This document shows, piece after piece, positions 38,849-48,766 of a stretch of 64,000 nt of DNA; the first letter of the stretch is position 1, and every line of letters starts with the position of its first letter. A model generated the notes under the pieces. That model was not told where the DNA came from. It saw only the letters and a list, made by a program, of their open reading frames with translations, and made no database searches. Origin of the DNA: Trichosphaerium sp. ATCC 40318 (Eukaryota > Protista > Tubulinea). The DNA lies in assembly GCA_038496445.1 (NCBI GenBank), contig JALMLS010000455.1, forward strand, positions 372,001-436,000, read 5' to 3'. A program made the translations under genes and the position numbers.

Positions 38849-41800
38849 TTACAATGTCCCTGAAGATGACTTGAAAGTTCGGACCATTTCTTGCGCTTGA
38901 TCAAGTTGTTGTGATAATCGAGCTATTTCAATATCCTTCTCTCTTATTTCTTCTACAAGACCAATAATAATTTTATCCTAAGCAAGATTAAGATCACGTG
39001 ATAAGAAGAGCAGAGAAGAAAAAAACGCGAAAAAAACCCCGAAAAAACTCCACTTACTTTCTCTTCAATCTTCTGTTGTGCAAATATACCATTTGCTCCA
39101 TTCAATGGTGTTAAAGTCGTAAGGGAAAACTGTACAAATAATTTATGGTTTAATAATTCTTCACTACTTGGCCTCGCGTCAGGGTCAACAGCTAATAACT
39201 TCGAAACAAGCTGTGCCTAAAAAAGAAAAAAAAAAGTCAGACTCCGAAATAACACTAAGCTGGGGAACCTCTTCTTTATGATTTTTCCACATTTCATCAG
39301 GTATCAAAGCTTGTCTTGCTCTTAAAAGTTTTCTAACAAAATCTGTAACATTATTGTTCCTTGTCATGTACATTTCTACAAAAATCATTCCAAAAGCAAA
39401 CATATCAGCCTTGAAGTTATAATCGGCAACCTAAACAAAAAAACACGTGTCAACATTCAAAATCAAAGTCCTCTAAGAAGTATAGCATGCATAGTAATCA
39501 CTCACTTCATACATACGCTCCGAAATCAAAGAACAAGAAATAAAAAACAAATTAGAAAATGCTCTTTTAAACGTACACGTTGATGACCTTTTTGATGGAA
39601 TTGCTCAGGTGCAGAGTATAGACGATTTCCAACGCCAGTTGTCAATCTATAATATATTTCTGCAGTTGGCTTATCCCACGACTGAATAGTTTTTTCATCT
39701 GCCTGAAAAACTCCAGGTAGGGAAGCTTGATAAAAAACGTAAATACCAAAAAGTACAACAAAAAAAAAAATTGCATTAGTACACTTTGGATGTCCGCCAT
39801 CAAGTGAAGCAGTAGGTGACTGAGGGAATAAAGTAGGTGGCGCATTAGCCTTAACTCTAGCTTCTTCTCTATCGTTTCTAACTCTAGCAGCAGTCTTCAA
39901 GTCACGTGCCAAGCCAAAATCACCAATTTTAACTAAAAGAAAAAAAAAGTAAGCAAAAAACGCAAGTGAATGGATTTGATAGAAGTGATATCACATTATA
40001 GTTATTGTAAAAGCAAAGAGCATTGAATGAATTACAAAAAACCGGTTAATATATATTTGAGTATACCTGATCGCCCATCCTTGCTGATAAAACTAAAGAA
40101 CCAAGTGAGAAAATGGAAAATAAAAGAGCATTAAAAAAAGAACCAAAAAACTTGTTCCCAAGCTCAGAGCACGTACATATTGGATGGTTTTAGATCTCTA
40201 TGGACACAATCATATTTATGTATATGCCTCAATCCTTTTACTACAAACAAATTAAACAAGAATCTTTTTAACACGTGATAAATTAAAGGACTACTCAAAA
40301 GAGCATTAAAGATATACTTTCAAGGAACGAAAAAGCTTACGTATTTGAAATAATATATGCAAGTTTTCTTGCGGTTTAATGTTACGCTTAGGATCATCAA
40401 GCCAATCTCTTAATGTTGCAGACTGACATAACTCCATTACCATATATAATACACTCTTTTTTGCTAAACAAAGAATTAACTTAGTAATCTATCAATGTGA
40501 AGATCTTGGTACCTATCGAATCTGACAAGCTGTTCGTAGATCCAGTTGATAGCAAACTAGAATCAATAGATGAATAACTCCCATTACTAGCAGAGAATAC
40601 AAGAGAAGATTGACTTGTTGAGAAGGAATGTACATCTCCACTTGCAGATCTAGAGACAGGGTATAAATATCAAGATGTTAAAAAAAAGATAATACGCAGT
40701 AACACTGTTACTCGTTTTCCTGAAGCTCTATACACAAAAAGTGATCTTCAACGTACGTAATGGTCTCCCCTTCTTTGGATGTAGCATCACCTACAGTTGT
40801 ACCACTCCGTGTCTTTTCTAAAGAACTCTTTCGTGATAATTCTTCACTTGTCTCCTTTATAACATGCACGCTGTCTTCTGAGAAGTCATCCTCCTACAAC
40901 TCTAATAAACAATCGTACAAAAGAAAACAAGGCAAAACATCTTTAAATCCATTAACGAATTCACAACTAACCTCTAACCATGAAGTGTAATATCGCCTAG
41001 TAGAACCATTAGATCAATCAATCTCAGAACGAAAAAAAGAAAAAGTTAAAACTTTTTCAACAATGACTTTGACAGCTCCATGAAGGGTTACGTACACTAT
41101 ATTTTCATGTGGACTCATTTTTGCGAGTACATTTACTTCTTTGACTCTCCTTTTAAGAAGTTGAGCATCACGTAAAGTATCTAAACTCTACAGAAAAAAA
41201 TCAACAAAAAGGTTTACACAAAATAAAAATATATCAAAACTCGTAAAACAAAAAGGCAAAACTGAAGTGCCACTGGCTTTATAACCACTCCAGCATGCTA
41301 AATATTAACACGGACACACTAATTTCTCCGGTGACACGCGACACTGTAAGAATAACTGAAAAAAAAGCGTAGAAACCCAAAGTGGGGTGGCTTACCTCGA
41401 AATGAACTTTTTTAATAGCATAAAATTGACCATCTAACTCATTCTTACACTTGTACACTGCTCCAAAGTTTCCTCTTCCTAAATGCTCAATCTCTAAACA
41501 AAAATTTTAGTAAGACTGCAAACAAATAATACAATAGAAGAGGGGCCTGCGGCAGTCCACAAAGAAACAAAAAAAAAAAAAGAAATTGATTCCTACTTCC
41601 AAAAAGGCTTTTTACGCTACTGATTCACGTGGTTTTTATACAAGGGTTGTAAACGCTTGATTATGAGCTCGAAAAAATATCAAAAAATAAATAAAACAAA
41701 ACTCGGCGTTAGATTACGTCGTAAACATTTCGCAATAACCTTGCAAGCGTATTTTACGCAAAATTAAAAATACTTATCACAAAAACAAAAAAAAGTTCGT

Positions 41801-42499
41801 CTTTCTTCGAGAATTGTTTGACAAGTCCGCGCTCCCATACGCACCTTTGTATTCATGAGCGTATCTCTTACTTCTAGCAGCTGATAACTTTGAAGTGTCA
41901 CGTATTACAGCAACAAAGCCCTTTATAGGCCCAGAATCAGATTTAATCTCTCCCAACGATATTTCTATTGGGAATACAACTCCATTCTTTCTACTTCCTT
42001 TGAGTTGACGTGTAACACCAATCTTCGTGTACGTTTTAGCGTAAAGAAGAGTGTTACGAGAAGAAAAAAAAACCCGGTAGAACCGCGTACTAGTTTGCCT
42101 TGGCGTGTTTTATGGTAAGACTTTAAGAACATGTGGTGGACATCTCTATAAGGCGAAGGCATCAAAGTAGATACGTTTTCGCCAATTATCTCGTCTCTCT
42201 CGTATTCAAACATCTAGGGAAGTAGTGTACGTGTTATAAATGTGTATAGCATTATTAAATAACGGTATTTGGTATATACCTTTACTGCGGCATCATTAAA
42301 GGATGTAATGACACCTTGTTTATCTGTTGTAACTATAGCGTCTATTATGGCATTGACAACAGCCGATTCGGCCATAGTAAATTCGAGAGTACCACTGCCC
42401 TTCCTATTGTCTGTCATTCATGTATTAGACATTCTTAGTGCTCTCACTTGCCGATAAGTTTGGTTTCCTCTTTTTCGGTTCTTTGGCGCTATTATACAT
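38849..42499 (-). CDS. eIF2-alpha kinase (HRI/PERK/GCN2 family) with N-terminal FixL-type PAS domain and C-terminal coiled coil
   Basis: [28 protein letters not shown]...[22 protein letters not shown]...IGVTR...[15 protein letters not shown]. Kinase [38 protein letters not shown], long Ser-rich insert, [40 protein letters not shown]. The start (42499, or 42417) is tentative. Confidence 0.9.
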
Positions 42500-43548
42500 C
42501 CCCCCGAACCTCTTTTGCTACCTTGGGAACTTGAGCGGTATTGGCTCATGCGGGAGCAACAGCCTTCTTTTTGATTTAGCGTTGAAATAGCAAAGCTCGC
42601 CGTTGACGGTCTTTGTCTTTTAGCAGGTGGTGCTAAAACCTCTTTTGAGCATTTACGACGCATGTACGTGTGTGTCACAAGTGTCTATTGTCGGAAAATG
42701 AACTAATAATTCATTGTGACACATTTAATGCTTGTAGGCCTCTTACCAGCTGTTTTCTATGAGAATTCATTGGGATTTATGCCTGTTACACGCGATTTCG
42801 AAAGGAAAATACCTAACCTGTTGCTTTTTTCTTGATTCACAATGTACTAAGAACGGAGTAATGTACTGGTACGTAAAAACGCGTAACGGGGGATTATGCA
42901 ACTAATATACGAGCCTCAGTTCTTGATATTTAATAGCTCAGCTATGGGGCAAAACGCTAGTTACAGCTTTGGAGACGGACAAAAGGAATAAAATGTCCCA
43001 ATCCGTATTTTATTTTTAAAGTGATAAAAAGTGTTAAAAAGTACTGAAAAACTGTTGCTGTTTTAAAGAGCTCGTTGCTCCGCTATTATTAGTTTTTGAT
43101 ATTGAACTCCATTGAAAAGTAGTACATAGCCCTTTGTTTAGCGTCAAAAAGCTAAAGCCTATACACAGAACGGCCACAATTAAGAAAAACAGTCACATAC
43201 AATTTTTGGTCTTTTCACGGATTTTCACCAACGCAAACGTCATAGCTACATTACTTTCAAGTATTTTCTTGATTGTAATGAATACTAAAGACATAACTAG
43301 CAAAGGATGGCGTACTACTGTAACATACTATTGATTCAAATAAAGAAAGTAACTTTTCCGAATGAGACTAGAAAACTCAAGCACTAGATTATTCATCTTT
43401 TAGCCGTCTACAATATCTTTGTTTGTCGAGAACCAAGGATTAAGACACTAGTCTTAAAGTCACATGTAGTATTAAAACGCACACAAACAGGCTTTTATTG
43501 TGCTTTTAAACAGGTTTTCTTTAAAATATCTAAAGGTATTACATGGTT

Positions 43549-48766
<5,218 letters not shown>

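Follow-up and report, generated by a model that had tools for sequence, protein, structure and literature searches.

Does a free-living protist carry a kinase of the type that phosphorylates eIF2α, with a heme-binding PAS domain of the bacterial FixL type as its sensor? This question is raised by a gene on contig JALMLS010000455.1 of Trichosphaerium sp. ATCC 40318 (assembly GCA_038496445.1), within the 64,000-nucleotide (nt) stretch from 372,001 to 436,000 that was analyzed here and is called the window. The original prediction, made from the letters of the window, had placed a FixL-type PAS domain in one protein with an eIF2α-kinase-like domain, and this fusion is now supported by the sequence, by protein family scans and by complementary DNA (cDNA).

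PAS and kinase exons on one spliced mRNA

The locus is one intron-rich eukaryotic gene on the minus strand (Table 1). Its exon model was drawn by eye on that strand and then checked against public transcript contigs (runs X1 to X4, with X2 derived from a related organism); residue numbers throughout refer to the 695-amino-acid (aa) model that begins at ATG 42663. Fifteen of its splice joints are listed in the RNA contigs, and the sixteenth (41188-41395) was obtained by arithmetic on the record of a contig. A single 2198-nt cDNA contig (X4 record 13) matches the window with zero mismatches from 38831 to beyond 42700, with the modelled introns spliced out, thereby spanning all exons and carrying those of the PAS domain and those of the kinase together.

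The joint between exon 4 and exon 5 (41493/41845), at which the PAS part passes into the kinase part, is present in contigs from X1, X2 and X4, which represent three studies; the contigs from X1 and X2 show subsets of the joints seen in X4. Because this joint occurs in cDNA, the fusion exists at the level of RNA rather than as an artefact of the gene model. The PAS-kinase architecture is thus expressed as one spliced mRNA. The predicted order, a PAS domain preceding a kinase with a large insert, is likewise borne out by collinear Pfam matches of the exon pieces (PAS and PAS_9, then Pkinase), whose exons share this one cDNA contig, and the peptide strings quoted in its favor are found in the minus-strand exons.

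Table 1. Features of the PAS-kinase gene, in window coordinates and residues of the 695-aa model
Feature	Coordinates	Strand	Residues	Details
Whole coding span	38849..42663	(-)		17 exons; longest open reading frame 695 aa; ATG 42663; stop 38849-38851
Exon 1	42452..42700	(-)	1-70	5′ leader and possible N-terminal extension
Intron 1	42404..42451	(-)		48 nt, GC-AG (GCAAGT...AG)
FixL-type PAS domain	41845..42403	(-)	~84-197	Exons 2-4: 42280-42403, 42091-42213, 41845-42022
His138 codon, predicted proximal heme ligand	42136..42138	(-)	138	HMMER alignment to 1d06_A
Arg158 codon, O2-binding G-beta Arg position	42008..42010	(-)	158	IGVTR/IGIGR alignment to 1xj2_A
PAS-to-kinase linker	41845..41893	(-)	~198-213	~16 residues; ends in RY..[DE][FY].E-type kinase lead-in
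Protein kinase domain	39058..41493	(-)	~214-640	Exons 5-16; collinear Pfam Pkinase pieces
Kinase insert, subdomains IV-V	40450..40893	(-)	285-380	96 aa, 28 Ser; between RYYTSWLE and LYMVMELC
Activation segment with long insert	39604..39921	(-)		Alignment to PERK 4x7h, 4g31
Exon 17, coiled-coil-like tail	38849..38977	(-)	654-695	Only weak Pfam matches: XLF_CC, Tektin, TPR-like

Bacterial contamination was considered as the source of the PAS exons and rejected, given that spliceosomal introns split these exons and that their removal is seen in cDNA. Two donor sites considered for the model, 40712 for exon 8 and 39254 for exon 15, were ruled out by the RNA contigs, which place these donors at 40757 and 39269; with the exon 8 donor at 40757, the kinase insert is shorter by 15 aa. 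Comparison of the window with the contigs of the related organism (X2) identified five exonic differences, all of them synonymous and at third codon positions (5/5), which, few as they are, we read as a clean sign of purifying selection.

Two further transcript signals were observed within the locus. A low-depth X3 contig at 41400-41544 comprises exon 5 and, in addition, the 3′ end of intron 4 (351 nt); it may represent RNA that was not spliced or a transcript initiated within the intron, the latter of which would encode a kinase lacking the PAS domain. Short T/A-rich tracts at 39219-39239 and 41681-41800 are touched by high-depth X2 and X3 contigs that continue into unrelated sequence and show a joint 41800/39219 with 11 extra letters; these contigs most likely reflect low-complexity matches of other transcripts rather than parts of this gene.

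The PAS domain and its predicted heme pocket

The three PAS exons are separated by phase-0 introns (66 nt and 68 nt), and their translations match Pfam collinearly (PAS 5-31, PAS 33-69 and PAS_9 64-102), so that the complete fold is covered. The spliced domain aligns over positions 7-125/128 with bacterial PAS domains at ~100 bits and 40-45% identity. When exon 3 was compared with all PDB sequences, the only matches were heme-PAS chains, namely Sinorhizobium FixL (SmFixL), Bradyrhizobium FixL (BjFixL) and DosP/EcDOS; in the same search exon 4 returned seven FixL chains first, followed by two marginal rows (E 0.9 and 1.3) and nothing else. No non-heme PAS structure of the PDB scored significantly with exons 3 and 4.

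Two residues of the FixL pocket, the proximal His and the G-beta Arg, had been predicted to be retained, and HMMER alignments with SmFixL and BjFixL bear this out. His138 occupies the proximal-His position of the F-alpha helix, pairing with residue 73 of the SmFixL chain 1d06_A, which we take to be SmFixL His194 (BjFixL His200) if that chain begins at residue 122. Arg158 aligns with the Arg of IGIGR in 1xj2_A, which is presumably BjFixL Arg220. The distal pocket keeps its hydrophobic residues as well (Leu153, Ile154, Ile174 and Leu176), in columns that hold Ile, Leu or Val in the bacterial domains.

To place these residues in a wider context, we compiled column statistics from 512 bacterial PAS domains recovered by exhaustive search, which with the window PAS domain make 513 rows. 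His is found in the His138 column in 373/513 rows and Arg in the Arg158 column in 298/513, the window row being counted in both. The two residues travel together: Arg accompanies His in 283 of the 372 bacterial His-type domains, versus 14 of the 140 domains that lack the His. With both columns masked, the window domain scored 132.5 bits on a hidden Markov model built from the His-type domains versus 103.6 on its non-His counterpart, a gap of 29 bits. Collectively, these comparisons point to a PAS domain of FixL type that probably binds heme.

Full-length comparison with FixL (Bradyrhizobium and Sinorhizobium; 1xj2, 1dp6 and 1d06) extends this likeness across the fold. Beyond the pocket residues already described, the shared features include the motifs LMP.P.R..H and FP.E.S.GE and the D-x-T/S signature at the end of the last strand, the window domain terminating in IRDTS. 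Unlike FixL, however, the window protein has a eukaryotic Ser/Thr kinase as its output, lacks the long coiled-coil linker, and is encoded by an intron-split gene in a protist nucleus. Pfam identified the output domain as Pkinase and not as a HisKA/HATPase histidine kinase, so the protein is of FixL type in its PAS domain only.

One pocket position departs from FixL and tells against a straightforward oxygen sensor: the FG-loop Arg that contacts a heme propionate (BjFixL R206, SmFixL R200) is replaced by Ser144, with Lys143 adjacent to it. SmFixL variants at R200 retain normal spectra of the heme and of its O2 and CO forms, yet they autoxidize and their signalling is altered (PMC10765370). By its resemblance to these variants, which autoxidize in air, Ser144 would suit a redox sensor, or a sensor of nitric oxide (NO) or carbon monoxide (CO), better than a stable sensor of oxygen (O2), and the DosP-type heme-PAS chains among the PDB matches fit such a reading as well. 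The same domains with the same heme could report NO, CO, heme redox state or, as in HRI, heme availability. We nevertheless consider it unlikely that the signal is one of these rather than O2, because the O2-stabilizing Arg158 and the hydrophobic distal pocket are retained, and for heme availability in particular because FixL-type hemes are bound tightly.

The pocket changes also bear on whether heme is bound at all. About one quarter of the related bacterial PAS domains have no His in this column, and the window domain differs from the pocket consensus at HD.Y (HH.F), at IGIGRE (IGVTRQ) and at the FG-loop Arg. These departures would be compatible with a heme-free PAS domain that serves as a dimerization module or binds another ligand, its His and Arg being inherited and unused. 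However, His and Arg have been kept jointly, the remainder of the domain still favors the His-type profile by 29 bits, and the uniformly synonymous differences in the related organism indicate a sequence under constraint, so that a heme-free domain appears decidedly improbable. The reading that we carry forward is a FixL-type PAS domain that probably carries heme on His138.

The kinase domain and its probable family

The catalytic motifs of the kinase are intact, including GRGNFG (218-223), Lys240, Glu262, HRD (430-432), Asn437, DFG (451-453) and APE (535-537). The hallmarks that set eIF2α kinases apart are an insert between subdomains IV and V, the motif LYIQMELC, the Lys corresponding to PKR Lys296 and a Thr in the activation loop (PMC4889150). 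Each has a counterpart in the window protein. Lys240 is the equivalent of PKR Lys296; the Ser-rich insert lies at the expected place and matched zero Pfam families; and the motif that follows it, LYMVMELC (381-388), is identical to LYIQMELC at 6/8 positions. Thr525 aligns with the activation-loop Thr of PERK (...RHTGQVGT...), the position of PKR Thr446.

Comparison of the individual exons with PDB sequences gave a similar picture. Exon 5, which encodes the glycine loop, matched HRI best (33 bits), ahead of Wee1 (26 bits) and of PKR and GCN2 (25-26 bits). PERK was the sole kinase returned by exons 10 and 14, and GCN2 was the best kinase for exon 15. Taken together, these piecewise matches lean toward the eIF2α kinases.

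Several observations pull in the opposite direction. The matches to PERK and GCN2 are individually weak (E 0.2-1.3), exon 16 matches generic kinases, exon 6 has zero PDB matches, and the family assignment is built from exon pieces and motifs rather than from a tree. Moreover, Asn530 (codon 39625-39627, the same in the cDNA contigs) stands at the position of the P+1-loop Thr, which belongs to a GT pair in PERK and corresponds to PKR Thr451. This Thr is conserved across most Ser/Thr kinases and is not specific to the eIF2α kinases, and its replacement by Asn could weaken or alter catalysis. Weighing these points against the hallmarks, we consider membership in the eIF2α kinase family probable, not proven.

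These same observations define a further alternative, namely that the kinase phosphorylates another substrate or is catalytically weakened, so that the PAS domain regulates a kinase with a different output. Asn530 would be in keeping with this, as would the distance of 81 residues from DFG to APE, ~50-60 more than in a typical kinase, and a family assignment that draws on short pieces, some with weak E-values. Against it stand the full set of catalytic residues together with the eIF2α-kinase hallmarks, and the fact that the best PDB kinase matches are HRI, PERK and GCN2. We therefore judge a different or weakened output to be very unlikely and retain an eIF2α-kinase-type domain as the preferred assignment.

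A kinase resembling PASK was also considered. In PASK, an N-terminal PAS domain regulates a Ser/Thr kinase in cis; its kinase is CAMK-like and its PAS domain is not of the heme type. The window protein shares the arrangement of an N-terminal PAS domain on a Ser/Thr kinase, but its PAS domain is of FixL type. PASK was not among the PDB matches listed for the exon pieces (for exon 5, the best 60 of 402), and a PASK-like reading is unsupported.

Intron 13 (39726-39782, 57 nt), which lies within the activation segment, is in frame and free of stop codons, and X2 record 6, a contig of low depth from the related organism, reads through it unspliced. If retained, the intron would lengthen the activation loop by 19 hydrophobic residues, although the read-through in X2 may equally come from pre-mRNA or DNA.

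Relatives, 5′ leader and proposed signalling route

To search for relatives, we queried 1.84 billion representative sequences with the 59-aa exon 4 using phmmer, which returned 1139 matches. Among the best 150 of these, none carried a Ser/Thr-kinase motif and none exceeded 48% identity, and the ten matches taken through Pfam proved to be bacterial histidine kinases with multiple PAS domains. Since identities reach at most 48%, the library holds neither the window protein nor a close ortholog; distant single-PAS relatives from eukaryotes may rank below the best 150. When exon 4 was scanned against metagenomes and GTDB, all matches lay at 37-54% identity; in GTDB the loci were bacterial, with Rhizobiales ranking first. 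As the scan is based on exact 8-mers, we draw no inference from it on the lineage that donated the PAS domain. A word search with a 154-aa stop-free stretch over exons 13-14 gave zero matches, and for the PAS piece the ESM Atlas yielded bacterial PAS fragments and nothing else. An ortholog of the fusion, against which its conservation could be gauged, was thus not found by phmmer with exon 4, by the metagenome and GTDB scans or by the word search with exons 13-14.

Among known proteins, HRI (EIF2AK1) would be comparable in function. In HRI, heme is bound by the protein's own N-terminal domain and by the kinase insert; HRI has no PAS domain and reports heme supply. The likeness lies in a heme signal delivered to an eIF2α-type kinase, as proposed here for the window protein, and in the kinase insert and activation-loop Thr; unlike in HRI, the window insert lacks a Cys-Pro motif and the proposed heme site is in the PAS domain. 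Because HRI senses heme through an unrelated domain, convergence with HRI, as originally suggested, is a fair description if the window protein works as we propose.

The layout itself is not without precedent. Anaerobic fungi encode proteins with an N-terminal PAS domain and a PERK-like kinase (Neocallimastix californiae 503500 and Piromyces finnis 367815), of unknown function, for which redox or oxidative-stress sensing was guessed and the type of PAS domain was not analyzed (PMC10512342). Like the window protein, they place the PAS domain ahead of an eIF2α-kinase-type domain and lack a luminal sensor (PMC10512342). By description, a transmembrane helix is predicted at the C-terminus of the fungal proteins (PMC10512342), whereas the window protein ends in a hydrophilic, coiled-coil-like tail. 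In the window protein the PAS domain is of FixL type and probably binds heme, and our literature search found no published description of a heme-PAS domain on an eIF2α kinase.

The start of the protein can be placed at one of three in-frame candidates, ATG 42663, Met39 (42549) or Met81 (42375). The frame that leads into the PAS domain is open back to ATG 42663, which we treat as a candidate start. An X4 contig covers 42451-42700 and continues ~55 nt beyond, and of the three frames, frame 0, the one leading into the PAS domain, has the best codon score in exon 1, yet below that of the RNA-confirmed exons. The possible N-terminal extension (residues 1-70) is basic, contains the motifs PPAKRQRP and PKNRKRG, and matched zero Pfam families.

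In this region the original prediction did not survive comparison with RNA. It had begun the first exon at ATG 42499, which required a 37-nt GT-AG intron; the contigs show a 48-nt GC-AG intron instead, at the joint 42402/42451 in X2 and X4, where 2 nt of slack are present and GC..AG is obtained only in the +1 register. With this intron, ATG 42499 is out of frame with the PAS domain, opening after splicing a 43-codon overlapping upstream open reading frame (uORF) that ends inside exon 2. A motif resembling a nuclear localization signal (PKKRKP), previously assigned to the first exon, is consequently absent from the protein. Intron 1 is in its own right a non-canonical splice site seen in two RNA contigs.

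The 5′ leader (minus-strand region 42320-42755) contains additional upstream ATGs at 42724 and 42714. The uORF at 42724 (23 codons) overlaps ATG 42663, and the 43-codon frame at 42499 overlaps ATG 42375. Overlapping uORFs of this kind resemble the layout of mRNAs under the control of eIF2α phosphorylation, here on the mRNA of an eIF2α-kinase-like gene itself. Farther upstream, a neighboring gene with an exon at 43689-44099 (minus strand) resembles, by eye, a class-III aminotransferase.

Bringing the two domains together, we lean slightly toward a soluble stress kinase of the eIF2α-kinase type, in whose N-terminal FixL-type PAS domain a b-type heme is most likely bound to His138. Inferred in this reading are the heme itself, its ligand, the polarity of the switch and the substrate of the kinase, as is any role in hypoxia or encystment. 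In the proposed route, the PAS domain would be altered when the heme takes up or gives off a diatomic gas, which would be O2 if FixL is the guide but might be NO or CO, or when the heme changes its redox state; bound O2 would be stabilized by Arg158. The altered C-terminal strand and helix of the PAS domain could then act on the N-lobe of the kinase, which begins ~16 residues downstream. The eIF2α kinases PKR, PERK and GCN2 dimerize through the N-lobe to become active. A change in N-lobe dimerization and in autophosphorylation of Thr525 would accordingly be expected to modify eIF2α phosphorylation and, through it, the rate of translation initiation. With a polarity like that of FixL, the kinase would be active in the deoxy form.

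The signals to which the known eIF2α kinases respond are uncharged tRNA, double-stranded RNA, unfolded protein and heme supply, and to our knowledge oxygen acts on them only indirectly. Tentatively, and with a confidence that falls short of even, we suggest that the window protein represents a further sensor class within this family, in which a heme-PAS domain reads O2 (or NO or CO) and switches translation initiation within one polypeptide. The origin of such a protein may lie in a bacterial FixL-type module into which introns were later inserted, and kinship with the PAS-PERK-like kinases of obligately anaerobic fungi is conceivable.

If this is true, the gene would provide a eukaryote with a one-protein route from gas tension to the rate of translation, and it would offer a compact system in which to follow the transfer of a PAS signal to a eukaryotic kinase. 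It also suggests what the PAS-PERK-like kinases of anaerobic fungi may sense. For free-living amoebae, it would furnish a testable idea of how hypoxia may be coupled to dormancy.

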